Source: Macrostomum lignano (Eukaryota). From it: 64,000 bases of DNA. Shown here piece by piece: positions 442 to 62,108 of the stretch (position 1 is its first letter; every line of letters starts with the position of its first letter). The notes below the pieces were generated by a model, which worked only from the letters and a program-made list of their open reading frames with translations, made no database searches and was not told the DNA's origin. The translations under genes were made by a program, and so were the position numbers. The stretch spans positions 62,001 to 126,000 of the forward strand of contig NIVC01001022.1 in NCBI GenBank assembly GCA_002269645.1. The letters run 5' to 3'.

Positions 442-3400
442 ATCTGATCCCAACTCGTCAATAGCTGAAACAGTCAAACGGGATAAGGTAAGAAAAACAA
501 AAATAATTAATTAATTTACAAAATCTTAGTTGCAAACACGCGATGCCCATGAGACAATTATTGCGACAGGATAAAATAGCATACAAAAAGCTTATATTGC
601 TACTAACAACCGATTTTGAGTAGAAATATACGAATTTTACTTCTAGTTTTACTCTCAACAATTTAATTCTTTCGCAAATCACGATAATTACATCCCAAAC
701 TTTCTCATTAAAGTCAGTCCATCAAATCAACAAGTCAATCTATCAAATCAACAAGTCAATCTATCAAATCAACAAGTCAATCTATCAAATCAACAAGTCA
801 ATCTATCAGAAATCAACAAGTCAATCTATCAGAAATCAACAAGTCAATCTATCAGAAATCAACAAGTCAATCTATCAGAAATCAACAAGTCAATCTATTA
901 GAAATCAACAAGTCAATCCATCAGAAATCAACAAGTCAATCTATCAAAAATCAACAAGTCAATCTATCAGAAATCAACAAGTCAATCTATCAGAAATCAA
1001 CAAGTCAATCTATCAAATCAACAAGTCAATCTATCAGAAATCAACAAGTCAATCTATCAGAAATCAACAAGTCAATCTATCAGAAATCAACAAGTCAATC
1101 TATCAGAAATCAACAAGTCAATCTATCAGAAATCAACAAGTCAATCTATCAGAAATCAACAAGTCAATCTATCAGAAATCAACAAGTCAATCTATCAGAA
1201 ATCAACAAGTCAATCTATCAGAAATCAACAAGTCAATCTATCAGAAATCAACAAGTCAATCTATCAGAAATCAACAAGTCAATCTATCAGAAATCAACAA
1301 GTCAATCTATCAGAAATCAACAAGTCAATCTATCAGAAATCAACAAGTCAATCTATCAAATCAACAAGTCAATCTATCAGAAATCAACAAGTCAATCTAT
1401 TAAACCTACAATCTAATAGTAAAACAAGCCAATAAGCCACTCACTCTGCGTTGGCGGATTGAAGAAGTTGAAGAACGAATCAGCCTCGACAGTCTTCGTG
1501 ACAGTTCGCTTCTGCCCGCTGCCCCGGTGCTTCTGCACTTTGCGCACCACTTTAACCGTGGCATTTTTGCCAGCCTTCCACAGGATCTCGCAGCCGCTGC
1601 AGCGAACAATCTCGGGGCCCTCATAGTCCCACGGGTGCTCAGGATCCGGCACCATTCTCAAATAATAATGCTTAGTAAGCATACTATTAGAGAAGTATTC
1701 GTTTGGCGAGAAATGAAACTCCAATACGAAACCGCTCTGCTCTCCGCTGAACGTGATCACCTTGATGTCGGTCAGGTGGCGCAGTATCGGCTCGTCTTGA
1801 TCGCGAATCATCTGGCTCAGCAGGTCGACGTTCTTGAGCGCCGTCAGCCAGAACCCCGGCACGCCTGGGCCTGCGGGCTGCTGCAGCTGCTGCTCCGACT
1901 GAGGTGCGTCACCGGCCTGACCTCCGGCTCCGTTGGTCAGAGCCGTCTGGCGAGGGAAGGGGTGATAATGGCTCTAATTGGGATATCTGATTGGGATTTC
2001 TAATTGGGATTTCAAATTGGGATTTCTAATTGGGATTTCTAATTGGGATTTCTAATTGGGATTTCTAATTGGGATTTCTAATTGAGATTTCAAATAGGGA
2101 TTTCTAATTAGGATTTCCAGTTGGGATTTCTAATTGGGATTTCGAATTGAGATTTCAAATTGGGATTTCTAATTAGGATTTCCAATTGGGATTTCTAATT
2201 GGGATTTCTAATTGGGATTTCTAATTGGGATTTCTAATTGAGATTTCAAATTGGGATTTCTAATTAGGATTTCCAGTTGGGATTTCTAATTGGGATTTCG
2301 AATTGAGATTTCAAATTGGGATTTCTAATTAGGATTTCCAATTGGGATTTCTAATTGGGATTTCAAATTGGGATTTCTAGTGAAGATTTCTAATTAGGAT
2401 TTCTAGTTGGGATTTCTAATTTGGATTTCTAATGGGGATTTCCAGTGAGGATTTCTAGCGGGGATTTCTAATTGGGATTTCTAGTGGGGATTTTTAAAGG
2501 GGATTTCCAGTGAGGATTTCTTGTGGTGATTTCTAGTGGGAATTTATAGTGGGGATTGCTAGTGGGGATTGGATTTATAGTGGGGATTTGTAGTGAGGAT
2601 TTTTCTAATGGATCTTCTACTGGGGATTTCTAATTGGGACTTCTAATGGGGATTCCTAGTGGGGATTTCTAATTGGCATTTTTAGGGGGATTTCTAATTG
2701 GGATATCTAATGGAGATTTATAATTAGGATTTCTAATTGGGATATAAAGTGGGGATTTCTAATTAGGATTTCCAATTGGGATTTCAAATTGGGATTTCTA
2801 GTGGGGATTTCCAGTGAAGATTTCTAGCGGGGATTTCTAATTGGGATTTCTAGTGGGGATTGCTAGTGGGAATTTATAGTGGGGATTGCTAGTGGGGATA
2901 TCTAATAGGGATTTTTAATGGATATTCTACTGGGATTTCTAATTGGGACTTCTAATGGGGATTCCTAGTGGGGATTTCTAATTGGCATTTTTAGGGGGAT
3001 TTCTAATTGGGATTTCTAATGGAGATTTCTAATGGGGATTTCTAATGGAGATTTCTAATGGGGATTTCTAATGGAGATTTCTAATGGGGATTTCTGGTGA
3101 AGATCTCTAATTCTAGTAGGGATTTCTAGTGCGAATTTCTAATGGGGATTTCTAATGGAGATTTCTAATGGAGATTTCTAATGGGGATTTCTGGTGAAGA
3201 TCTCTAATGCTGATTTCTAGCAGGGATTTCTAGTGCGGATTTTTAATGAGGATTTCTAGTGGGGATTTCTAGTGGGGATTTCTAATTCGGATTTCTAATA
3301 GGGATTTCTACTGGGAATATGATCGCCCTCACCTTCTCCCTCAGCAGATTTGCCAGTTCAACCTCAGACTCCGTGGTCTCCGGCCAGTCAGCCTCCTCAT

Positions 3401-6400
3401 CAGTTGGCTCAACGCTACCCAGAACAATTTGCTGTCGCCGATTCAACTGCTCGGCAAATCGATCGGCGTAGCGCATCTCCAAATCGTGCAGCTCGCGGTA
3501 GAACTCGGACTCAATTTCCAGCGAGCGGAACTGCAACTTCTTGAGGGCGCGAACCCGGCGCTTCACCGGCTCCGGCAGCCTGCGGTGCGACATCATTGGT
3601 TGGGGGCGATTTTTATGGGGATTAATTTGAGAGGCGATTTTTTGGGGATTAATTTGAGAGGCGATTTTTTAGGGATTAATTTGAGAGAAGATTTTTTGGG
3701 GATTAATTTAAGAGGCAATTTTTATGGGGATTAATTCAAGGGGCGATTTTCATAGGAATTAATTTGAGAGGCGACTTTTATGGAGATTAATTCGAGGGGC
3801 GATTTTTATGGGGATTAATTTGAGGGGCGTTTTTATGGGGATTAATTTGAGAGGCGATTTTTATGGGGATTAATTTGAGAGGCGATTGTTATGGGGATTA
3901 ATTTGAGATGCGATTTTTATACGGATTAATTTGAGAGGCGATTTTTATGGGGATTAATTTGAGAGGCGATTTTTATGGGGATTAATTTGAGAGGCGATTT
4001 TTATGGGGATTAATTTGAGAGGCGATTTTTATGGGGATTAATGTGAGAGGCGATTTTTTGAGGGATTAATTTGAGGGGCGATTTTAATGGGGATTAATTT
4101 GAGAGGCGATTTTTATGGGGATTAATTTGAGATGCGATTTTTATACGGATTAATTTGAGAGGCGATTTTTATGGGGATTAATTTGAGAGGCGATTTTTAT
4201 ACGGATTAATTTGAGAGGCGATTTTTTGAGGGATTAATTTGAGAGGCGATTTTTATGGGGATTAATTTGAGATGCGATTTTTATACGGATTAATTTGAGA
4301 GGCGATTTTTATGGGGATTAATTTGAGAGGCGACTTTTATGGAGATTAATTCGAGGGGCGATTTTTATGGGGATTAATTTGAGGGGCGTTTTTATGGGGA
4401 TTAATTTGAGAGGCGATTTTTATGGGGATTAATTTGAGAGGCGATTGTTATGGGGATTAATTTGAGATGCGATTTTTATAAGGATAAATTTGAGAGGCGA
4501 TTTTTATGGGGATTAATTTGAGAGGCGATTTTTATGGGGATTAATTTGAGAGGCGATTTTTATGGGGATTAATTTGAGAGGCGATTTTTATGGGGATTAA
4601 TGTGAGAGGCGATTTTTTGAGGGATTAATTTGAGGGGCAATTTTAATGGGGATTAATTTGAGAGGCGATTTTTATGGGGATTAATTTGAGATGCGATTTT
4701 TATACGGATTAATTTGAGAGGCGATTTTTATGGGGATTAATTTGAGAGGCGATTTTTATGGGGATTAATGTGAGAGGCGATTTTTTGAGGGATTAATTTG
4801 AGGGGCGATTTTAATGGGGATTAATTTGAGAGGCGATTTTTATGGGGATTAATTTGAGATGCGATTTTTATACGGATTAATTTGAGAGGCGATTTTTATG
4901 GGGATTAATTTGAGAGGCGATTTTTATGGGGATTAATGTGAGAGGCGATTTTTTGAGGGATTAATTTGAGGGGCGATTTTAATGGGGATTAATTTGAGAG
5001 GCGATTTTTATGGGGATTAATTTGAGATGCGATTTTTATACGGATTAATTTGAGAGGCGATTTTTATGGGGATTAATTTGAGAGGCGATTTTTATGGGGG
5101 TTAATTTGAGAGGCGATTTTTTTGGGGATTAATTTGAGAGGCGATTTTTATGGGGATTAATGTGAGAGGCGATTTTTTGAGGGATTAATTTGAGGGGCGA
5201 TTTTAATGGGGATTAATTTGAAAGGCGATTTTTATGGGGATTAATTTGAGATGCGATTTTTATACGGATTAATTTGAGAGGCGATTTTTATGGGGATTAA
5301 TTTGAGAGGCGATTTTTATGGAGATTAATTTGAGAGGCGATTTTTATGGGGATTAATTTGAGGGGCGATTTTTATGGGATTAATTTGAAAGGCAATTTTT
5401 TAAAAGTTATAAGTTTGAATTGCAAGAGTGTGAGCTGTTTAAGATGCCAAAACACACAACATGTATAACAAAAATATTTTTATGTTTTTTAATAACGAAT
5501 GAAAATGATACAGATAGCAGTCCAGACTAGATTAATACAATAGCATAGAGCAGGGATTATAATAAAAAATCCAGCCCAAGTGATAGATGACGGTTATAAG
5601 ATATCAAGTAAATCAAAAAGGAAGATATAATAAGGATGCGATAATTTTAGAACAGCTCGAATAATATTCTCCCATGGGGAAAGCAGGGCAAGGCAAGATT
5701 AATCCCAAACATCCCAAATATCCGTTTTAGATTTTTTCCCATTTCTTGACTTCCGAAGGCAGAATTCTTAATCCATCAATCATTTTTATTCTTTTTTTCC
5801 TGTGAAAGCCAGCTAGGCGAGGCCATATTTAGAAGGATTATGTTTTAAAAAATTACACAGAGAATTTATGTATCTTTGTCGTTGGAGATTAAAAGTACTT
5901 AGAGAGTCCTCAGAGTGTCACGAGATAAAGGACCCACTGAAATACAGAATGATACGACTGAGATAACCGAGGGCCATATAATGGTCCCAGGTCGCTTCAT
6001 GGAAATAGAAATTTCAAAATCTACACAGTATAATTTTACCAGCAGAAATTTTATATCCCAGAACAGGGGCCGGCAAACTTCGGCCCGCGAAGCCCCTCTA
6101 TCCGGACCAGCTCGAATCTTTTGAAATTTCACAATAGCAATCCGGCCCGCTTGAGATTTGCGTCTCTTCTCAGCTCTCTTCTCTCCTCACTCTCTTCTCT
6201 CATCACTCCCTTCTCTCTTCTCTCCTCACTCTCTTCTCTCTTCTCTTATCATTCTCTTCTCTCTTCTCTCCTCACTCCCTTCTTTCTTCTCTTATTACTC
6301 CCTTCTCTCTTCTCTCCTCACTCTCCTCTCTTCTCTCCTCACTCTCCTCTCTTCTCTCCTCACTCTCTTCTCTCCTCACTCTCCTCTCTTCTCTCCTCAC

Positions 6401-14544: not shown

Positions 14545-15530
<986 letters not shown>

Positions 15531-16097: not shown

Positions 16098-16866
16098 TGC
16101 CTTTGCTTATGGAGTGCCATCATGGAGTGCCTATGCTCATGGGAGTGCTTATGCTCATGGGAGTGTCTTTGCTCATGGGAGTGTCTTTGCTCATGGGAGT
16201 GTCTTTGCTCATGGGAGTGTCTTTGCTCATGGGAGTGTCTTTGCTCATGGGAGTTCCTTTGCTCATGGGAGTTCCTTTGCTCATGGGAGTGTCTTTGCTC
16301 ATGGGAGTTCCTTTGCTCATGGGAGTGTCTTTGCTCATGGGAGTGTCTTTGCTCATGGGAGTTCCTTTGCTCATGGGAGTGTCTTTGCTCATGGGAGTGT
16401 CTTTACTCATGGGAGTGCCTATGCTCATGGGAGTGTCTTTGCTCATGGGAGTTCCTTTGCTCATGGGAGTTCCTTTGCTCATGGGAGTGTCTTTGCTCAT
16501 GGGAGTTCCTTTGCTCATGGGAGTGCTTATGCTCATGGGAGTTCCCTTGCTCATGGGAGTGTCTTTGCTCATGAGAGTGCTTATGCTCATGGGAGTGTCT
16601 TTGCTCATGGGAGTGTCTTTGCTCATGGGAGTGTCTTTGCTAATGGGAGTGTCTTTGCTCATGGGAGTGTCTTTGCTCATGGGAGTGTCTTTGCTCATGG
16701 AAGTGTCTTTGCTTATGGAGTGCCATCATGGAGTGCCTTTGCTCATGGGAGTGCTTATGCTCATGGGAGTGTCTTTGCTCATGGGAGTGTCTTTGCTCAT
16801 GGGAGTTCCTTTGCTCATGGGAGTGTCTTTGCTCATGGGAGTGTCTTTGCTCATGGGAGTGTCTTT
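16098..16866. repeat. 18-bp tandem array GCTCATGGGAGTGTCTTT
   Basis: About 42 units; the frame-preserving unit gives 6-aa repeat ORFs in four frames. Confidence 0.97.
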
Positions 16867-17141
16867 GCCATTGTTAGTAGGGAATAAGCTAGAATTAAAA
16901 AAATCAATGAAAGCATTTAGCGCTGTATATAATATTTTGCTTTTTAGCTTGCTCACTTTGGATGCTTCAATATATTTTGTTATTTACTTAGCTTAAGTTT
17001 CTCATGTGTCCAGTTAAACATATTCAGTAATGTATTTATTTGTAAAACATTAATAATTCCTTTTTTAACTTTGATGACAGGTCAGCTATATCCGGCAGTA
17101 ACGCATTGGATGCTTCAAAATATTTTTCCTGGCTGTCCGCA

Positions 17142-20100
17142 TCACTCCTGACCAAGGCGTCGCAATTTCTCTTCGTAGAATTCCTGCAGCCGTCGTTGCA
17201 GCCGCTCGCGCTCCGATTCAGCTGACAAGGTGGCATCATCGGCGGCGCGTTTGATCTCCATGAGACCGCCGCCAGCCATGTAGCGGACTGGCCAGCCGCG
17301 CCTGCTGACAGCTGATCTTCTGTAGGCGGGAAAAGAGCTCGAAAATTCAATAGTAGTTAATTTGAACACTTGGAGAAAAAGAGAGAGAGAGAGAAAGAGT
17401 CTATGTGGCCGAACTGTCAACTTGGCTGTCTTTTTACGTCGCCCTCTGATTTCCCATTTACACCCCTTGAAGCATGGGTATAATTACTGTTATTGTGCCA
17501 TAGACATAGACTGAGAGAAAGAACAAAAGACCGGGGAAAAGTCGGGGGGAGGGGGGTGCTGGGGGTGTGGGGGCTCCCATTTCAACCATAGACACTTTCA
17601 TTTGATTAAAACAAAACAGCAGCCACTACCACAGAACAGGTCTCGGCCATAGACAATTAAGCCAGTCAAGCTGACGCAGACTGCAAGGCTCTGCTCTCTG
17701 CTTTAAAGACAATCTAGTAGAGTATTTCAAACCCAGTTATCTTGGCTACAGACCTTCATTTTTACCCTTTATGCTGATTTTTAATTGTATTATTTACTTG
17801 ATTGACTTTATTGGCTATGATCTAAATGAATGCCTATAATGTGGGTTTACCATGTGGTAAATATCTCTTTAAGAAGTTGCAACACGCAGGTGAATGCCAC
17901 TCAGAGAAAATGCTTCTAAATCTTGTGTTAAATTGATTAGCAATTTAAAAAACAGACGTTGTATCTCAGAGAAGGCCCTAAGCATCGACCGTGTTTCCAT
18001 TTCAAGTGACAGCACGACAATGGAACTATAGCTATAACCCTACACAACAGCCATTATCTAAATCTTTTTCAAATCCAGAGCTTTTATAGCTCAAAAGGGA
18101 CACCAATGTGAGACAAGTCAGTTGGTGTTGGAGGCAAGAGACAAACTATCCAGCCAACCAATGCATTTCAATTTCAATAGAGAGAAATCCCTCGCAGTCC
18201 AACAGCTGGGAGCTCCAATCAATCACCTAGAAGCTGAAGCGCTAGATCCTGTCAGCTGAAGCAGCTTACTCATTAATAAATTATCCTTTGTCTCTACTGA
18301 GTTGCTTGGCTTGTTGCTTCTGCTGGTCTGTTCTCTCCCTCTCTATCGGTTTTTTCCTTTCGACATCACTGTCGTATCGACAGCTGCTGCGTTGGAATCC
18401 GGGTGGGCAGTAAGCCGCTTAAACTCTGCGCAGGCCACTATGGGCTATAATAGCCTGAAGCTGTTCATGCAAAGATTCAATGGCTACTGCCTCTCAATAC
18501 TGTCACGCCATCTACACAGCACGTAAAGCCAGTCTACTCAAAAAAAGTTAAACGACTCAAAAAGAAAACTTTTCAATGTGTTTTTTCTTATTATTCGATT
18601 GAGGCGGCGATTTCCGCAGAATGGAAAAAAAAGAAATTTCATGCTGTTTTATTAAGCTGATGCGAGATGAATTTCTGTATGTGGAGTGGCATTGTTCTCC
18701 TGGCGCCCTGATGCAGAAAGCCATTAATACCTGAGCAGGTCTATAGATGCTGCGTGGGTGGGGCCCCAAGAATGAAAATAAATGGATTCCCTGATACTTT
18801 GCTGGTAACTGCTTCAAGCGATGCAGAAATAGAGAAAAATAAACAGTTATACGGGTAGCTTAGCGGTTGAAGGTTCGATTCCTGCGCGGCCACATTCCTT
18901 TCTGTGCGAGAGCAAAAAAACTCAACCCCCCCCCCCCCGAGACGGTGAGAGAAAGTCTGGGCGGCTGTACATCCTGTGCAAGCGTGTACCTGCGCGTTCT
19001 TGTCTGCGTGCGCCTGCGTGCTCAGGGGTTAGCGGAATGAGCCTGACTGTTAGCTTACCCAAATGCTGCAAACTTACTAAACACTAAGTCAGGCACTTAG
19101 ACAGACACTAAGACAGGCACTAAGACAGGCACTAAGACAGGCACTTAAGACGGACACGAAGTCACTAAGTCAGGCACTAAGTCAGGCACTAAGTCAGACA
19201 CTAAGTCAGGCACTAAGTCAGGCACTAAGTCAGGCACTAAGTCAGGCACTAAGTCAGGCACTAAGTCAGACGCTAAGTCAGGCACTAAGTCAGGCACTAA
19301 GTCAGACACTAAGTCAGGCACTAAGTCAGGCACTAAGTCAGGCACTAAGTCAGGCACTAAGTCAGACACTAAGTCAGGCACTAAGTCAGGCACTAAGTCA
19401 GGCACTAAGTCAGGCACTAAGTCAGACATTAAGTCAGGCACTAAGTCAGGCACTAAGTCAGGCACTAAGTCAGGCACTAAGTCAGACACTAAGTCAGGCA
19501 CTAAGTCAGGCACTAAGTCAGACACTAAGTCAGACGCTAAGTCAGACACTAAGTCAGGCACTAAGTCAGGCACTAAGTCAGACACTAAGTCAGACATTAA
19601 GTCAGACACTAAGTCAGACGCTAAGTCAGGCACTAAGTCAGGCACTAAGTCAGACACTAAGTCAGACACTAAGTCAGACACTAAGACAGGCACTAAGTCA
19701 GACACTAAGTCAGACACTAAGTCAGACATTAAGTCAGGCACTAAGTCAGGCACTAAGTCAGGCACTAAGTCAGGCACTAAGTCAGGCACTAAGTCAGGCA
19801 CTAAGTCAGACGCTAAGTCAGGCACTAAGTCAGGCACTAAGTCAGGCACTAAGTCAGACACTAAGTCAGACACTAAGTCAGACACTAAGACAGGCACTAA
19901 GTCAGACACTAAGTCAGACGCTAAGTCAGGCACTAAGTCAGGCACTAAGTCAGACACTAAGTCAGACACTAAGACAGGCACTAAGTCAGACACTAAGTCA
20001 GACACTAAGTCAGACACTAAGACAGGCACTAAGTCAGACACTAAGTCAGACACTAAGTCAGACATTAAGTCAGGCACTAAGTCAGACGCTAAGTCAGGCA

Positions 20101-20656
20101 CTAAGTCAGGCACTAAGTCAGTCGCTAAGTCAGGCACTAAGTCAGGCACTAAGTCAGGCACTAAGTCAGGCACTAAGTCAGGCACTAAGTCAGGCACTAA
20201 GTCAGGCACTAAGTCAGACGCTAAGTCAGGCACTAAGTCAGGCACTAAGTCAGACACTAATTCAGATACCACTACAGCCACAAGACTCTATAGTGTCGAG
20301 ACTTAAGCACTAAAATGCGAAAAATGAGACAAATATCATGGTAGACTGTCACAACCGCAGTGACTCTGGTAAATCCAATAGACTCATTCATCAAGGTAAA
20401 GGTTTAACTGATTGATAGATACCTGTATAGTAAACAGAAGAGTCAACAAAACAGACCTTCCGTCGGCCTCCTCATGCCCAGATCGTTTGTCCAGTTCCTC
20501 CTGCGATGCAGGCAATGCAGTGACCAGGTCCATCACAGCCAGCACAATAACTGAAATGAAGTTTACCAACTATCATAGGTTCGATTCCTTTTTTAAATCT
20601 ATTTTTCGCTACTCACCCAAAGAGCAGAAAACTGGCAGTAGAGCGTACTTCGACAT
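17142..20656 (-). CDS. Putative secreted neuropeptide/prohormone precursor, 103 aa; exons 20617-20656, 20457-20550, 17142-17319
   Basis: ATG exon and GT-AG junctions in consistent phase (1,2) give MSKYALLPVFCSLVIVLAVMDLVTALPASQEELDKRSGHEEADGRRSAVSRRGWPVRYMAGGGLMEIKRAADDATLSAESERERLQRRLQEFYEEKLRRLGQE. Hydrophobic N-terminus, several KR/RR sites, AATAAA about 100 nt after the stop. Confidence 0.72.
18853..19060 (+). mobile_element. Second tRNA-derived SINE-like family (internally shortened head)
   Basis: A box TAGCTTAGCGG and B box GGTTCGATTCC. The body GCGGCTGTACATCCTG...CTCAGGGGTTAGCGGAATG recurs on the minus strand near 36075, 45610-45725 and 46105-46250. Confidence 0.6.
19081..20262. repeat. 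12-bp tandem array CACTAAGTCAGG/CACTAAGTCAGA in intron 2 of the peptide precursor gene
   Basis: About 98 units; explains the LVPD/LVSD ORF 19145-20281. Confidence 0.98.
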
Positions 20657-21012
20657 TTTATGCTCGCGAATTTGATGATATTCTTTTAAATATTTTTTTG
20701 ATATCTGAATTTGGAAATATCCCGGCAGAGAAGGTAAGGCGCCAAAGTTGAAGAGGACGAATTTATTAATATTGTTCAAGCAATGAGAAACTGCCGGTCA
20801 AACAGGATGTTGGTGTGCCAATCCAGTCAGCTGCTGATTGGTTCAGGAGGGAGAGCGGCGCTTCTGACGTGTCCTTGTCCAATGTGCTGATGGTGAAGCA
20901 CTCGTCCTGGTCCCTATAGTTATCCAAGTCATGTAACACTCTTCTGTAGAATGCTTGCTGAGCTGCATCAAAGCCTACCTAGCATGTAACATTCCAATAT
21001 ACATCGGGACAT

Positions 21013-32102: not shown

Positions 32103-35100
32103 TCACTCGCAAGCCAGTTTGCCATCAAACGATGACAGGGCCACACCAAAGGCCTGCAGAGCGCACATTGGATAGGCGAAGTCCATGGTGAAAATGTCAT
32201 CGGAAATGCGACCGAACTGCATCACGATGTAGTCGACTGTGAAAGTGCAGGGAGCGGTTTATAGATACAGAGAGTGTACATGCCTACAAACTATTAGAAA
32301 GTCAAACTTTCGTTACTCACCATCGTTGTCGTGAACGACTTGAAAATTTTTCACCGAAGCTTGAGTAACTCGACCGTGAAAGTTGAGCACATAGGATTGC
32401 GTGTCTACGAATAGATCGAGATGTTTTGGGAAAGGTTTTTCTCAGTTTTAAATGCCATTGAAGGAGTTGTTAGGGCTACATATACTTCTCAAAATAGCGA
32501 CATTGACTCTGTGATGCTGTACCAGCAGACAAAGTGACATTGACTCTGTGATGCTGTACCAGCAGACAGAGTGACATTGATTCTGCAACACTGTAGACAG
32601 AGTGACATTGACTCTGCACTACTGTAGACAGAGTGACATTGACTCTACAATACTGTAGACAGAGTGACATTGATTCTGTGATACTGTAGACAGAGTGACA
32701 TTGACTCTGCACTACTGTAGACAGAGTGACATTGACTCTACAATACTGTAGACAGAGTGACATTGATTCTGTGATACTGTAGACAGAGTGACATTGACTC
32801 TGCACTACTGTAGACAGAGTGACATTGACTCTGCACTACTGTAGACAGAGTGACATTGACTCTGCAATACTGTAGACAGAGTGACATTGACTCTGCACTA
32901 CTGTAGACAGAGTGACATTGACTCTGCACTACTGTAGACAGAGTGACATTGACTCTGCACTACTGTAGACAGAGTGACATTGACTCTACAATACTGTAGA
33001 CAGAGTGACATTGACTCTGTGATGCTGTACCAGCAGACAGAGTGACATTGATTCTGCAACACTGTAGACAGAGTGACATTGACTCTGCACTACTGTAGAC
33101 AGAGTGACATTGACTCTGCACTACTGTAGACAGAGTGACATTGACTCTACAATACTGTAGACAGAGTGACATTGACTCTGCACTACTGTAGACAGAGTGA
33201 CATTGACTCTGCACTACTGTAGACAGAGTGACATTGACTCTGCACTACTGTAGACAGAGTGCCATTGACTCTGCAATACTGTAGACAGAGTGACATTGAC
33301 TCTGCACTACTGTAGACAGAGTGACATTGACTCTGCACTACTGTAGACAGAGTGACATTGACTCTGCACTACTGTAGACAGAGTGACATTGACTCTGCAA
33401 TACTGTAGACAGAGTGACATTGACTCTGCACTACTGTAGACAGAGTGACATTGACTCTGCACTACTGTAGACAGAGTGACATTGACTCTGCACTACTGTA
33501 GACAGAGTGACATTGACTCTACAATACTGTAGACAGAGTGACATTGACTCTGTGATGCTGTACCAGCAGACAGAGTGACATTGATTCTGCAACACTGTAG
33601 ACAGAGTGACATTGACTCTGCACTACTGTAGACAGAGTGACATTGACTCTGCACTACTGTAGACAGAGTGACATTGACTCTACAATACTGTAGACAGAGT
33701 GACATTGACTCTGCACTACTGTAGACAGAGTGACATTGACTCTGCACTACTGTAGACAGAGTGACATTGACTCTGCACTACTGTAGACAGAGTGCCATTG
33801 ACTCTGCAATACTGTAGACAGAGTGACATTGACTCTGCACTACTGTAGACAGAGTGACATTGACTCTGCACTACTGTAGACAGAGTGACATTGACTCTGC
33901 AATACTGTAGACAGAGTGACATTGACTCTACAATACTGTAGACAGAGTGACATTGACTCTGCACCCTGACTTATATAGGCACTGTAAATAGAGGTGGGAA
34001 AAATATTCTCGATGCAGTGAAATTTACAGTATTGTAGAGAGTCGCACTTACCTTCATTCCAGACAGGAGTTTTATTGTGCAACTCTAGCAAGTTGTTCAT
34101 TTCCTTTCTCTTGTACCTGGCCAGCAGGCCGTCATCGTCCGACTTCGGACGGAGTTCGATCCTCTCCGAATCAGCGTTCATGCCCGGCAACAGGACGGTC
34201 ATCTTCCTCGGGCCCCGGAACCCCAGCACGTTGGTCTCGTAGGCGATCGCCGCCAACTCTCTACGCGCCAACTCGCCGCTTTTCTTAGGCGCCTCGCCGT
34301 TGTCAAACACGGTGAAACCAGTGCCAAAAAAATTGCCGCGCAATTTGCCAACGAAACTTTCGCCGGCACGTTTCAGATCTGTCGGGTCGCAGGAGATCAG
34401 GTAGTTCGCGGTGGACGAGTGGCGGCGCTTCCGAGCGGCCAGCAGGAAGATTTTCTTGCCATCATCGCGTTCCATGTGCAGGTAGTAAGTCGGGTAGCGG
34501 GTCCGCTCGATGCCCCGCGTGTCTCGAGTGATGCGGCCTTTGATTACGCAACCCTGAGGTGCCGGTCGAAGCACGAACTCTTCCAGATCTTCGGTTGGAT
34601 CCGGGATCAGATTGGCCAGACGGGAAGCGGTGCCCAGCTTCTGTTGGCTGCGGCGTGACTCCTAAGGTGGGGTTGTGTTCGCCATTTGCACATTGTTGCT
34701 GGGGTCATAGATGCTTTTATTGCAACCTCACACAGTTTATGATCTCAGTCATAGATGCTTTTATTGCAACCTCACACAGTTTATGATCTCAGTCATAGAT
34801 GCTTTTATTGACCCCACAGTGTATGTATATGATCTCAGTCATAGTACGAGACGCGAGACGCCTTAGCAACAGACATGTGTAAGACAAGAAAACGATTCAA
34901 AATATGTACATTATTTTAATCTTTTTAGCTCAGTGAAATTCAAAGAAATCCAATTACTAAGAGATTTACGTGCATAGAAAATTGAAAAGGAAATTAATTA
35001 TTAAATTCCTATTAGTCAGTCCAGCATTCGGTCACGAAATTTGACAGTCAAATCTGATCGGAAATGACGTGCTTTAACTTCATCAAAGAATTATTTAATT

Positions 35101-38100
35101 AACAAAGACAGCCTTTGAAGGCTTTATAAAGAACTCCATGAATGACTGGTCAGTCCTATTCCAGATCGCACATCTAGAACTCCATGAATGACTGGTCAGT
35201 CCTATTTCAGATCGCACATCTAGAACTCCATGAATGACTGGTCAGTCCTATTTCAGATCGCACATCTAGAACTCCATGAATGACTGGTCAGTCCTATTCT
35301 AGATTGCACTGCATCTAGAACTCCATGAATGACTGATCAGTCCTATTCCAGATCGCACATCTAGAACTCCATGAATGACTGGTCAGTCCTATTTCAGATC
35401 GCACATCTAGAACTCCATGAATGACTGGTCAGTCCTATTCTAGATTGCACTGCATCTAGAACTCCATGAATGACTGATCAGTCCTATTCCAGATCGCACA
35501 TCTAGAACTCCATGAATGACTGGTCAGTCCTATTTCAGATCGCACATCTAGAACTCCATGAATGACTGGTCAGTCCTATTTCAGATCGCACATCTAGAAC
35601 TCCATGAATGACTGGTCAGTCCTATTTCAGATCGCACATCTAGAACTCCATGAATGACTGGTCAGTCCTATTCCAGATCGCACATCTAGAACTCCATGAA
35701 TGACTGGTCAGTCCTATTTCAGATCGCACATCTAGAACTCCATGAATGACTGGTCAGTCCTATTTCAGATCGCACATCTAGAACTCCATGAATGACTGGT
35801 CAGTCCTATTCCAGATTGCACTGCATCTAGAACTCCATGAATGGTCATCAAGTCGGCAGTTACAGTGAATTGCTAATCCTACCTTAACCCCGAATTCTCC
35901 TCTCCTCCCACAGACTGCAGCAGCAGAGTTAACAAAGGCATTGTCAAACAAAGGTTTAATAGACAAAGGTGAGCTCTTGTGGACCTCGGCTAGTAATATG
36001 GCTTGTAATTAGAATAATTTACACAAATTATATTACTAGCTCGTAGATCTCAAGAATCCAATGAACGCATTCAGGAGTGTACAGCGGTCCTAACTTTATT
36101 TATCGTTAGGCATGTACATGTACACTTCACTGTGCCTAGACAACTGGGCTTACGTCCCTTACTTAGAATCAACCGATAGTGTATGTAATAAAGAATTGCA
36201 GAGAAATATCTAAAAATAGAAACATATACGAGCGTAGCTCCTATACACTTGCAACGCACTGCTAAAGATGTGGACTTTACCTTGGTAGGATCTACCATCT
36301 ATTTCTATTAAAGTTACTCTCGAATTTGAACCCAGAAGCTCGGTTAACTTTGTAACTGTCGCCCAAAATTTCAAACAATCCTATCCTACAGTCTTAACCC
36401 GCAATATCTAAATTCCCTCTCGAACTTCCTCCTCCTCTCCTCTTCTCGATCAACTAGTGGGTGGCTTCAAAGCACAGGGAGAGGTCGGCTAACGCCCCAG
36501 ACTGCCGGCAAACCCGCGCAGCTGTCCCCTGTCCTTCCTCCGCCCTGCGCAGGGCCCTGCTTGGACTCAACCGCAGGGACATCAGGGCGGTGACCATGGC
36601 CCCCTCGAATCATGGCTGTTTTGCCAGGCATCGTCACCTCCAGGGAAAAATCTGCAGTGAGGAATGCCCATTCTGCCCCTCCGGTGTCGAGAATGCGGAG
36701 CACTTTATCTGTGAATGCCCCGCCTTTACTAATGACAGGCTCACCTACCTCGGCTCAAACCCCGACCTCTGCGACGTTTTCAGGCCCGAGAATCTATGCC
36801 AGCTCGGGCTACCGGGCGAGCGACCATCCACCTCCTGGACTCTCCGAAGGGGGGATCTCACTGCGCAACACCGCAGCACCAGCTGCCAGTGGTCGCCAGG
36901 GGTTAGCGAAATGGGCGGCAACGCCTCCTCGCTGCATCCGGATGCACGGAGCCCCCCCTGCAGCTAAGTCAAGATCCTCAAAGAGGATTCGAACCCGGGA
37001 CCACTGAGTAGAACAGGGAGCAGCCCGCCAACTCACATCTGTCGCGGAGTCCAGCCGCACGCCGTGATTCCGGATGCTGTCCATGGATTTGTTCCGCGGG
37101 ATCGGCCCAACCTGGGTCTCGTCCTCGTCGCTCACGTCGTCGTCCAGATTGCCCCGGCGACCACCGCCGGCGGCGCCTTCATCTTCATCATCATCTTCGT
37201 CGTTGTCATCCTCGTCATCTCGACGCCGTCGAGCCTGCCGCTGCTTGCCGCCAGCGTCCTGCGGACTCGACGATCTCTGCCGGCGTCTGTCGTCGCGGCC
37301 GTCGACAGTCAGTCGATCGGGACCGCGGCGACGCGGCGCCTGGCGACTGTCTCGACGATCTTCATCATCGTCATCGTCGTCGTCGTCGCTTCGTCTGCCG
37401 CCGCCGCCGGACCTTCTTGGCGGCCCCCTTGACGGTGAAGCCGACGAAATTCGAGTCTCTTCCGGTCGTTTCTTGTTGCGCCGATCGCTGGAAGCGCCTC
37501 TGTCGCCTCTGCTTTTGCCGCCGCTGCCGCCGCCGCTTCGTCCGCGGTCTTTGCTGTCGCTATCGGACGAGTCGTAGTCTTTGGATTCGCCCTGCGGCGA
37601 GGCGTCGATTTTCAGCACGTGCACCCGGGTGGTGACGCCGTCCGGGTTGGCCATCTGGTAGGACTGCGGACCGTCGTAGGCTGCAAAACGGAGCATGAAA
37701 AAACATATCTGGACTGGACGTGACAGTCGGAATGAAAGGGAGAGTGGCGAGGAAGAGAGGGAGTCAGGGAGAGGGAGATATGGAGATAGAGGGGAGAGAG
37801 GAGGGATGGAGAAGAGAGGAAAGAGTTGGAGAGCGAGTAGAAGGAAAGAAAATGAGGCATGGAGATCATGAGATAGGGGAGAGGTAGAAGGGAGGGGTAG
37901 AGGAGAGATGTAGAGGGGAAGGGTAGAGGGAAAGGTTAGGGGGGAGAGGTAGAGGTGAGGGGTAGAGAGGAAGCGTAGAGGGGAGTGGTAGAGGGGAGTG
38001 GTAGAACGGAGTGGTAGAGGGGAGTGGTAAGAGGTAGAGAGGTACAAGGTAGACAGCAGAAGGAGAGAGACGAAGAGAGGGGATTTCCTCACCGAAATGC

Positions 38101-39367
38101 GATCTGTCGCGACTCCGCTCTCTCCCGGAGGGTGAAGCGGCGGCCCCAACAACCAGAGGCGACCGCTCATTCTCCTTGCCAGCGCTGCGCCTGCCGCTGT
38201 TGGGCCGCAGGTCGTTTTTTTGCACAATGCCAGTAGAGGTGGCCATGCGCTTCTGGGCCTTGCGCTGGGCCAATTCCATCTGCTTGCGATTTCTCTGATC
38301 GCGAAGGTCGTCTTCGTCCATTACGCTGGGGACGAGAGGGAACGGGGGTGCTTGCGGTTATCGATATGGATTGCTGTGGGTGGCAGATTGACTTGTAGGG
38401 GATGTAGGGTGCTGTAGGGGGCATCTGCTGCTGTAATTTGTTGTGTCATGAGTGCTGTAGGTTCTGTACGTTTTTTATGTAAACTACTGTAGGATTCTGT
38501 AGGATTCTGTAATGTATAGTACTGTAGGTTTCTGTATTGTAATGTAGAGGGTGCTGTATTGTAATGTAGAGGGTGCTGTATAGTACTGTAGGGTGCTGTA
38601 TAGTACTGTAAAGGGAGCTGTATAATACTGTAGGGTGCTGTATAGTACTGTAGGGTGCTGTATAATACTGTAGGGTGCTGTATAATACTGTAGGGTGCTG
38701 TATAGTACTGTAGGGTGCTGTATAGTACTGTAGGGTACTGTATAGTACTGTAGGTTGATGTATAATACTGTAGGGTGCTGTATAGTACTGTAGGGTGCTG
38801 TATAGTACTGTAAAGGGTGCTGTATAATACTGTAGGGTGCTGTATAGTACTGTAGGGTGCTGTATAGTACTGTAAAGGGTGCTGTATAGTACTGTAGGGT
38901 GCTGTATAGTACTGTAAAGGGTGCTGTATAATACTGTAGGGTGCTGTATAGTACTGTAGGGTGCTGTATAGTACTGTAGGGTGCTGTATAGTACTGTAGG
39001 TTGATGTATAATACTGTAGGGTGCTGTATAGTACTGTAAATTGCTGTATGAAAGTCTAGATTGCTGTATAGTACTGTAGGGCGCTGTAAATACTGTAGGG
39101 CGCTGTATAGTACTGTAGGGTGCTGTTGTCGCCAACATGACTATACTCTCTTTACCTTCCGGGTGGAACAAAGGACTTATCGTTGCTGTACAGGCTCTCA
39201 AAGCTTGGCGCCTTTGGAATGGATCTGAAATTTTAAAAGCAATTACTTTAGCTTGTAGCAGTGTTCATTAACTAAAGTCAAACGACATATAACAAAATAT
39301 AACATATAGCTTACTTCACGTCTAAATGATTAGCATAATTACTTCTACTGGAGACTGGTCGTTCCAT
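32103..39367 (-). CDS. TUB: Tubby/TULP family protein, ~608 aa; exons 39315-39367, 39156-39224, 38093-38325, 37037-37680, 34052-34661, 32321-32404, 32103-32236
   Basis: Complete tubby domain (LRPAPQG...[43 protein letters not shown]|[22 protein letters not shown]|[39 protein letters not shown]). N-terminal S|VMDEDD echoes TUB S-VLDDE. All junctions are GT-AG and phase-consistent (1827 nt). The first two exons are less certain. Confidence 0.95.
32497..33962. repeat. 31-bp tandem array GACAGAGTGACATTGACTCTGCACTACTGTA in a tubby intron
   Basis: About 46 units, with a 533-bp higher-order duplication. Confidence 0.97.
35131..35842. repeat. 46-bp tandem array TCTAGAACTCCATGAATGACTGGTCAGTCCTATTTCAGATCGCACA in a tubby intron
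   Basis: About 15 units with 49-bp variants. Confidence 0.96.
36461..36850 (+). mobile_element. 3' fragment of a Loa/I-group non-LTR retrotransposon (CCHC zinc-knuckle tail), antisense in a tubby intron
   Basis: CRQT...[21 protein letters not shown]....[19 protein letters not shown]...RL.YLG is the typical LINE C-terminal C-x2-C-x7-H-x4-C region; frameshifted after ENLCQL. Confidence 0.8.
37735..38085. repeat. AG-rich low-complexity tract filling a tubby intron
   Basis: Polypurine tract between the exons ending 37680 and starting 38093. Confidence 0.88.
38505..39122. repeat. ~20-bp array TGTATAGTACTGTAGGGTGC in a tubby intron
   Basis: Direct periodicity. Confidence 0.95.
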
Positions 39368-49656: not shown

Positions 49657-51223
49657 ATGTCGGCCTTTGAAGGACTGGAGCAGCTGAAGAAAAAGGTGCA
49701 AGCAATGAGAACTGAACTCGATCAGAAAAATGACGAGCTGGACGAGAAAAAAGCCAAGTTAAAGGTGAGCAATTAGATTTGAGCATCTAGTTCGCTTTTC
49801 TCAATCTCCAAGGCATCTCATAATTTACACTAGCTGCTAATGCATTTTTATTGCATCTCCTAATGCATCTTCTAATGCATCTTCTAATGCATCTTCTAAT
49901 GCATCTCTTTATGCATCTTCTAATGCATCTCCTAATGCACATCCTAATGCATCTCCTAATGCACATCCTAATGCATCTTCTAATGCATCTCCTAATGCAT
50001 CTTCTAATGCATCTCTTTATGCATCTTCTAATGCATCTCCTAATGCACATCCTAATGCATCTCCTAATGCACATCCTAATGCATCTTCTAATGCATCTCC
50101 TAATGCATCTTCTAATGCATCTCCTAATGCATCTTCTAATGCATCTCTTTATGCATCTTCTAATACATCTCCTAATGCATCTCCTAATGTACATTCCTAA
50201 CGCGTCTCCTTACGCATCTCCTAATGTATCTCTTTAAGTATCTTCTAATGTATTGCCTAATTTATCTTCTAATGGATCTTCCTATGCATCCCTTTGGTAT
50301 TTCATAATGTTTACTCCTAATGTATCTCCTAATGTATCTTCTTATAATGCACCCCATGACCGCTTTCAACTCGTCTGTGCCTTAGAGGTTGGAGCTGATG
50401 GCTGTGAAAATCGCGCGACAACCCCCGCTAACAAATTTTCGTGCACGTGAAATGAATGGAATGGAACCGGTGGTCGCTGAGAGAGAGAGAGAGCGAGTCA
50501 GACGCTTTTCGATTTTTCACAAATTTTCTTCGTTTATCACAATCTCCCAACTTTGATTTCCCCTCGCCACAGGAGGAGCGCCAAAAGTCCGCCGCATATC
50601 AATCCGATGTCGATGAGTTGCAGCGTCGGCTAACAAAGCTGGAGTCGGACAAAGCGACTGCTGAGGACCGTTTGGCAACCATCGAGAGCCGCCTCGCTGA
50701 AGAGTCGGCCAGAGCCGAAACTGCAGAACGACTGCGCCTCGACACGGAGAAGTCCGGAGTCGAACGCGAAGAACGCCAGGAGGAGTTGACCAAACGATTG
50801 AAAGAGTCGCGCAGTCGAGCCGAAGAAATCCAACGCAGCATCGACGAGTGGACGCGCAAGCTCAGAGCCGCCGAGAGCGCCCTGGATCGCGCCCTCGAGC
50901 TGGCATCCACAGCCGAGTCCGAAGCGGCAGATTTGGAGTCGGAGAACTCCGCTAGCATCCAGCAGCTGAGATCGTTGGAACAGCAGGAACGCGCTGCCAT
51001 GGAACGGGAGGACGAACTCGACCAGGAGGCCCATCGGCTCGAGCAGATTCTTGCTGAGACCGAGCAACGCTGCCAACTGGCTGAGAAGGAGTGCCTGAAG
51101 AAGAACAAAGAGATGGACAAAATACGCGACGAGATTGCCAGAGACCAGCAGCTGATCGACTCGCTCGAAGAGGAACTACGTCGAGGAGTGATGGAGATTC
51201 AGCTCAATCAGGAAGCTGGATAA
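49657..51223 (+). CDS. TPM: Divergent short-form tropomyosin-like coiled-coil protein, 252 aa; exons 49657-49764, 50573-51223
   Basis: MSAFEGLEQLKKKVQAMRTELD...LK|EERQKS...DVDELQRRLTKLESD..AEDRLA...E.TRKL..AE..L.RA.E.A..AES....LE.E.....QQLRSLE...E.E.ELD.E..RLE..L.ETE.R..LAEK aligns by eye along short non-muscle tropomyosins. Phase-0 GT-AG intron. Confidence 0.8.
49841..50345. repeat. 12-bp array TAATGCATCTCC/TAATGCATCTTC in the tropomyosin intron
   Basis: Direct periodicity, decaying on the right. Confidence 0.96.

Positions 51224-52610: not shown

Positions 52611-53730
<1,120 letters not shown>

Positions 53731-56250: not shown

Positions 56251-62108
<5,858 letters not shown>

Follow-up and report, generated by a model that had tools for sequence, protein, structure and literature searches.

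The 64,000-nucleotide stretch analysed here, referred to as the window, covers positions 62,001 to 126,000 of contig NIVC01001022.1 of Macrostomum lignano, a species of an early-branching genus of rhabditophoran flatworms. Its minus strand contains a three-exon gene. Joining of 20656-20617, 20550-20457 and 17319-17142 gave a 312-nt coding sequence that encodes a 103-amino-acid protein, MSKYALLPVFCSLVIVLAVMDLVTALPASQEELDKRSGHEEADGRRSAVSRRGWPVRYMAGGGLMEIKRAADDATLSAESERERLQRRLQEFYEEKLRRLGQE. A preliminary description of the window, made from the sequence alone, had proposed this gene, and the protein that we rebuilt matched the proposed product letter for letter; both introns are of the GT..AG type. 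The gene has a paralogue in the same species, and one 15-residue segment, GWPVRYMAGGGLMEI, is conserved between the two genes together with the pairs of basic residues at its two ends. The gene is probably a small prohormone-type precursor, an orphan seen so far only in Macrostomum, which would give one non-amidated 15-mer and a helical associated peptide. The features of the gene are given below in window coordinates.

20657-20776, minus strand: 5′ untranslated region (UTR), minimum extent, from 40 stop-free in-frame codons before the ATG in the UniRef entry A0A1I8H4U9
20617-20656, minus strand: coding part of exon 1, 40 nt, codons 1-13 plus 1 nt, followed by a phase-1 intron
20551-20616, minus strand: intron 1, 66 nt, GTGAGT...TTTCAG
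20457-20550, minus strand: exon 2, 94 nt, end of the predicted signal peptide (to 20516) and non-conserved propeptide
17320-20456, minus strand: intron 2, 3137 nt, GTCTGT...CTACAG
19082-20265, no strand: minisatellite in intron 2, 12-bp unit CACTAAGTCAGG, ~99 copies (Tandem Repeats Finder, 92% matches)
17142-17319, minus strand: coding part of exon 3, 178 nt including the TGA stop; the core peptide was placed by tblastn at 17303-17235
17303-17298 and 17252-17247, minus strand: RR51-52 and KR68-69, the basic pairs bracketing the 15-mer
17253-17297, minus strand: conserved 15-mer (residues 53-67), predicted bioactive peptide, from paralogue conservation
17145-17246, minus strand: C-terminal "associated peptide" (residues 70-103), predicted charged helix (AlphaFold2, AF2)
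17035-17040, minus strand: AATAAA polyadenylation signal, 101 nt past the stop codon

Gene structure and transcript support

As judged from the upstream reading frame of A0A1I8H4U9, the transcript starts at least 120 nt 5′ of the ATG, near 20776. The 5′ UTR stretch 20657-20776 has a GC content of 32% and contains no ATG; the start codon is the first ATG of the transcript and has an A at −3. GC content is 47-61% in the coding exons and 32-45% in the introns and UTRs. Exon 2, which has the same sequence in the homeologous locus L001, stops within the codon of R45 (AG|A) at a phase-2 intron, so that splicing completes the RR45-46 pair, as had been described. The CACTAAGTCAGG array in intron 2 spans ~1.2 kb. 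A CCAAT box (20841) and a CGTCA half-site of the cAMP response element (20869), both consensus matches only, are located on the minus strand, ~65 and ~93 nt 5′ of the point at which the minimal transcript begins. A tRNA T-arm-like 11-mer, GGTTCGATTCC, occurs on the plus strand at 18872-18882 and 20578-20588 (0.04 occurrences would be expected by chance). Each copy is intronic and antisense to the gene, the one at 20578 being in intron 1, and the two are probably remnants of a tRNA-derived short interspersed element. ARAGORN detected no tRNA gene in the window, and no Rfam family matched there.

The same spliced product is present in GenBank as PAA94507.1, PAA58213.1 and PAA73231.1 (BOX15_Mlig025753g1/g2 and BOX15_Mlig002456g1), under the name "hypothetical protein, partial", and in UniProt as A0A1I8HT75 ("Uncharacterized") and A0A1I8H4U9 ("Promotilin"). 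These M. lignano entries show 96-100% identity over all 103 residues and represent the window gene together with its homeologues in the polyploid genome of the M. lignano DV1 line. The "partial" status of the GenBank entries and of A0A1I8H4U9 corresponds to a reading that continues into the stop-free 5′ UTR. The NIVC01 annotation was made from a genome-guided RNA-seq transcriptome using StringTie/TACO, TBONE and TransDecoder (PMC5730564), and the splice junctions are therefore supported by transcripts. The gene had been called hidden and possibly undescribed. It is hidden only in a prokaryote-style list of open reading frames (ORFs): its model is public and annotated as a hypothetical protein, and what has not been assigned to it is a function.

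In the homeologous locus L001, 6 of the 312 coding positions differ from the window gene, all of them in the C-terminal helix, resulting in four amino-acid differences; the introns are 92-96% identical. With just six differences, the ratio of nonsynonymous (dN) to synonymous (dS) substitution rates between homeologues is uninformative. The DV1 line is known to be a hidden polyploid, and the three near-identical copies agree with this.

The paralogue Mlig029116 and the pattern of selection

When 1.84 billion representative proteins were scanned in full with HMMER, one further relative was detected, the M. lignano paralogue BOX15_Mlig029116g1/g2, a protein of 89 amino acids (E = 2.8e-7). The paralogue has three genomic copies and bears the automatic UniProt name "Adipokinetic hormone" (A0A1I8JFX4). 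Both genes have three exons, a 40-nt exon 1 and introns of phases 1 and 2, the exon sizes being 40/79/151 nt in the paralogue and 40/94/178 nt in the window gene. In the paralogue, a phase-2 intron comes after exon 2, a few codons ahead of the conserved block, and in both genes the 15-mer and the two cleavage sites bracketing it are located in the last exon.

Identity between the paralogues is 43-45% overall and very uneven, with ~30% outside the core. The near-invariant core reads R-[GA]WPVRYM[AS]GGGLMEI-KR-[AS]ADD, and the remainder is barely alignable. Within the core, GWPVRYMAGGGLMEI of the window gene and AWPVRYMSGGGLMEI of the paralogue are identical at 14 of 15 residues, with basic pairs at both ends in both genes. 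By the Nei-Gojobori method applied to the two paralogues, dN was 0.08 and dS 0.40 over residues 51-73, while elsewhere dN was 0.82 and dS was saturated. The C-terminal helix is poorly conserved (dN 0.74), and only ADD, RE and RRL.E are kept in the C-terminal segment. From the saturated dS outside the core and the near-invariance within it, we conclude that the duplication is old and that selection has preserved one 15-mer plus the basic pairs on both sides of it. Such a pattern is the classic comparative mark of a bioactive peptide released by processing.

The preliminary description had predicted five peptides from this precursor and had proposed, as a check, whether conservation concentrates in them. 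The pattern above bears this out for the 15-mer with its flanking R and KR in the sole paralogue and for none of the other four peptides. LPASQEELD, amidated SGHEEAD and SAVS have no comparative support: KR35-36 and RR45-46 are without counterpart in the paralogue, in which the propeptide is RPMKEPAGHMKAEFAEEHHL up to a single KR. No second copy of the peptide motif was found in the window. The paralogue is flanked by a PH-domain gene and a galectin gene; neither neighbour was seen among the ORFs of the window, no shared synteny was seen, and a tblastx comparison of the window with the paralogue locus was swamped by minisatellites.

These results bear on whether the locus has any function. The gene has the small size, the minisatellite surroundings and the lack of a known domain that might be expected of a chance spliced ORF or of transcriptional noise. 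Against this stand three independent models based on RNA-seq, the GC enrichment of the coding exons, the AATAAA signal, and a paralogue with the same exon plan and purifying selection confined to one region. We regard a non-functional locus as effectively refuted.

Predicted processing of the precursor

The preliminary description had proposed a signal peptide, and the N-terminus has features of one. An MSK n-region is followed by 17 hydrophobic residues and then VTA|LP, features that were recognised by heuristics and that suggest a signal peptide. In both paralogues the 17-residue core has a mean Kyte-Doolittle value of 2.6-2.7, small residues occupy −3 and −1, and the remainder is hydrophilic and free of Cys. 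The dibasic sites are likewise where they had been placed. The predicted C-terminal helix was also recovered: the AF2 model has a helix over residues 63-102, with values of the predicted local distance difference test (pLDDT) of 82-92. Residues 29-57 have a pLDDT below 50, and the N-terminal part of the 15-mer is disordered in the model. The low-confidence stretch would be as expected of a linker or peptide region and not of a folded domain.

In Veenstra-type cleavage rules, KR followed by A or S makes a strong site. By these rules, we take KR68-69|A and both KR sites of the paralogue to be strong. RR45-46, with no basic residue at P4, P6 or P8, is presumably a poor site, as presumably are RR87-88 and RR98-99, both of which precede Leu. 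No Gly that could serve as a C-terminal amidation signal is found on the 15-mer (...MEI-KR) of either paralogue. Because there is no Gly before KR, the C-terminus of the 15-mer would be free. C-terminal amidation is common in neuropeptides and is not obligatory. At the C-terminus of the paralogue (L002, 13129-13279), which ends in NDNDGK, removal of the Lys could leave an associated peptide with an amidated C-terminus; no such signal is present in the window gene.

The following processing route may be proposed. The N-terminal 25 residues would be cleaved as a signal peptide, and the pro-protein would enter the regulated secretory pathway. A PC2-type convertase would then cut at RR51-52 and KR68-69, and a carboxypeptidase would trim the basic residues. 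This would release the 15-mer GWPVRYMAGGGLMEI as the signalling product, its C-terminus free and not amidated. The propeptide ahead of the 15-mer and the 34-residue helix behind it would be spacer or "associated" peptides, possibly helping in sorting or folding. M. lignano has a PC2 homologue that is expressed in the nervous system and is lethal when knocked down (PMC4490696).

The same structural model can be read in another way, in which the product is not processed and is a small protein, either a secreted coiled-coil of ~78 residues or a type II membrane protein with an uncleaved signal anchor. The block WPVRYM.GGGLMEIKR.ADD would then be a binding motif capping a long helix and not a cleavage product. 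The continuous AF2 helix over residues 63-102, which includes KR68-69, fits such a protein, as does the continuation of conservation beyond KR into [AS]ADD and RRL.E. Pfam gave sub-threshold noise over the hydrophobic N-terminus, namely TMEM132_C (E 0.1-0.2) and Srx; the weak TMEM132_C match might be taken to suggest a membrane protein, but it reflects only transmembrane-like composition. On the other side, the basic pairs stand exactly at the two ends of the conserved block in both paralogues, small residues occupy −3 and −1 of the putative signal cleavage site, and the helix itself is poorly conserved between the paralogues and holds all four amino-acid differences between homeologues. We therefore consider an unprocessed protein quite unlikely.

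Searches for relatives and comparison with known hormone families

As the preliminary description had supposed, the protein belongs to no recognisable family. Pfam gave no match above its cut-offs for the window protein, the three homeologue entries or the paralogue, and its models for motilin, ghrelin, AKH, CRF and ELH matched none of them at E ≤ 10. A word-indexed search of 5.8e9 proteins, run with a single sequence and with a three-sequence profile, returned M. lignano proteins only, and so did the HMMER scan of 1.84e9 representatives. The back-translated motif gave 72 pattern matches in bacterial and archaeal genomes, 82 in viral contigs and 103 in JGI metagenomes, none of which was confirmed; these collections hold no flatworm genomes, and absence outside Macrostomum is not established by them. 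Literature searches with the gene ids, accessions and fragments of the peptide turned up nothing of relevance, the 5-letter fragments matching only noise such as surnames and similar strings. No matching string was found in the Schmidtea prohormone paper and its supplements (PMC2953531), and the family may still be listed in the flatworm neuropeptide surveys McVeigh 2009 and Koziol 2016.

Two UniProt entries carry the names of hormones, promotilin and adipokinetic hormone, and a divergent member of one of these families, of CRH/DH44/ELH (as suggested in the preliminary description) or of galanin was considered. The layout of the precursor, with a signal peptide, a short peptide, a basic pair and an associated peptide, is common among such hormones. 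Like galanin/GMAP, motilin/MAP and AKH/APRP, it has one presumed ligand copy, a basic pair and a longer, faster-evolving C-terminal peptide. The peptide itself has a superficially motilin-like N-terminus (any residue, an aromatic residue, Pro and an aliphatic residue, in our own reading) followed by a helix, and the GW after a basic pair resembles the N-terminus of galanin. We compared both paralogues, with the signal peptide removed, to human promotilin, the Drosophila AKH precursor, the human galanin precursor and CRH by Smith-Waterman alignment against shuffled sequences. The z scores ranged from −1.0 to 2.5 for all four hormones, within the shuffled expectation, and reached 23 between the paralogues.

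Each family was considered on its own features. For motilin/ghrelin, neither Motilin_ghrelin nor Motilin_assoc of Pfam matched at E ≤ 10, z was −1.0 and −0.5, and a 27-residue propeptide precedes the peptide. Members of the AKH/GnRH/corazonin group are 8-12-mers that begin with pyroglutamate directly after the signal peptide, have a Trp near the end and carry a Gly amidation signal. Adipokin_hormo of Pfam gave no match, and neither a Gln next to the signal peptide nor a Gly-basic motif is present (z 0.8 and 2.5). Unlike in motilin and AKH, then, the 15-mer is set off from the signal peptide, and it has neither a pyroglutamate start nor an amide. For galanin/spexin, only the first two residues of the GWTLNSAGYLLGP-type N-terminal signature are present (GW, or AW in the paralogue), with z of 0.6 and 0.3.

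The preliminary description had seen a loose resemblance of the C-terminal helix, with its L..LG ending, to CRH/DH44/ELH peptides, which are amidated helical peptides of ~40 residues. The helix of the window gene does have ~34 residues and is rich in charged residues and Leu. In contrast to CRH/DH44/ELH, the helix is conserved less than any other part of the protein and carries no C-terminal amidation signal, and L..LG is not kept: the window gene ends in ...LGQE and the paralogue in ...ELARNDNDGK. No CRF or ELH model of Pfam matched at E ≤ 10, and z was −0.4 and 0.5. With no Pfam match and z scores within the shuffled range, the CRH/DH44/ELH resemblance is therefore unsupported, and so are the UniProt names "Promotilin" and "Adipokinetic hormone", which by Pfam and the alignment statistics appear misleading. 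Membership of any of these named families is very improbable.

A candidate orphan peptide and its possible role

If the precursor is processed as proposed, the 15-mer would act on a receptor, most likely a G protein-coupled receptor. The closest likeness known to us is to the orphan "spp" and "npp" prohormones of Schmidtea mediterranea (Collins et al. 2010, PMC2953531), which likewise are precursors of ~90-100 amino acids with a signal peptide and a short conserved peptide between basic pairs. Like them, the window protein is free of Cys after the predicted signal cleavage site, has no family outside flatworms and presumably depends on PC2 for processing. Unlike this gene, the spp/npp genes have peptidomic and in situ evidence (PMC2953531); the window peptide is non-amidated, and no sequence match to it was found in that paper or its supplements.

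The cell type in which the precursor would act is a further question. The product could be a secreted, convertase-processed peptide of gland, epidermal, gut or reproductive cells, for example a defence peptide, a pheromone, a seminal-fluid peptide or a granule component. The sequence is silent on cell type, the features of the precursor suit any regulated secretory cell, and the family is lineage-restricted, as many gland and reproductive proteins are. Strict conservation of the 15-mer across an old duplication, with the rest drifting, would be expected of a receptor ligand sooner than of reproductive or defence proteins, which evolve fast. The 15-mer is also near-neutral, with one Arg and one Glu, and not cationic and amphipathic as an antimicrobial peptide would be. 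A weak further point is that the gene ids are not in the searchable supplementary lists of germline/neoblast and reproduction-related genes. A non-neuronal peptide thus seems unlikely to us, though worth keeping in view.

Several points weigh against the reading of the gene as a peptide precursor. The assignment of the signal peptide depends on heuristics. The AF2 helix runs unbroken from G63 through KR68-69, as it might in an uncleaved protein. On its N-terminal side, the 15-mer of the window gene is preceded by RR, which is a weaker cleavage site than the KR found at this place in the paralogue. The peptide is non-amidated and resembles no known ligand. Conservation was seen in a single pair of paralogues and in near-identical homeologues, all from one species, and the low dS of the core (0.40) could come in part from gene conversion. 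Expression, peptidomic or receptor data for the gene were not found in searchable paper texts and supplements.

With these points taken into account, a small orphan precursor giving the 15-mer and the helical associated peptide is still the explanation that we favour. Going one step further, we tentatively suggest that [GA]WPVRYM[AS]GGGLMEI may define a previously undescribed family of non-amidated neuropeptides, made up of two ancient paralogues with three homeologous copies each, with a receptor of its own and no detectable counterpart in other animals. We regard such a proposal as possible, though somewhat less likely than not.

A two-gene orphan family with a sharply conserved 15-mer is a clean candidate ligand for receptor de-orphanisation and could provide a marker or promoter for a neuron subtype. 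To our knowledge, stable transgenesis is routine in no flatworm other than M. lignano, and we found no published catalogue of neuropeptide precursors for this species in the literature. The family may also be useful for asking how lineage-specific peptide signals arise, and the present analysis corrects the two database names discussed above. As far as we know, orphan precursors of this kind occur in every animal genome; the gene would not surprise specialists and has no bearing on a long-standing open question.

Sequence surroundings of the gene

The window is extremely dense in minisatellite and microsatellite arrays and is typical of M. lignano. Tandem Repeats Finder (29 rows) detected about two dozen arrays, 0.3-1.8 kb long and with periods between 3 and 48 bp, and the majority of the six-frame "long ORFs" of the window are artefacts of them. 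Examples of the arrays are as follows.

724-1400, array
1973-5400, array
14552-15427, array
16120-16868, array
32564-33964, array
52611-53729, array
60635-61842, array

Other ORFs in the window matched known domains. The ORF at 33840-34574 on the minus strand encodes a Tub-family (tubby-like) domain (E = 4e-47) and probably forms the C-terminal exon of a tubby-like gene. Upstream of it, a 472-amino-acid ORF at 36809-38227 on the same strand gave no Pfam match and may or may not belong to the tubby-like gene. On the plus strand, a 255-amino-acid ORF at 50456-51223, which starts with ATG, matched Pfam Tropomyosin (E = 4e-21) and appears to be a tropomyosin-like coiled-coil gene or exon.

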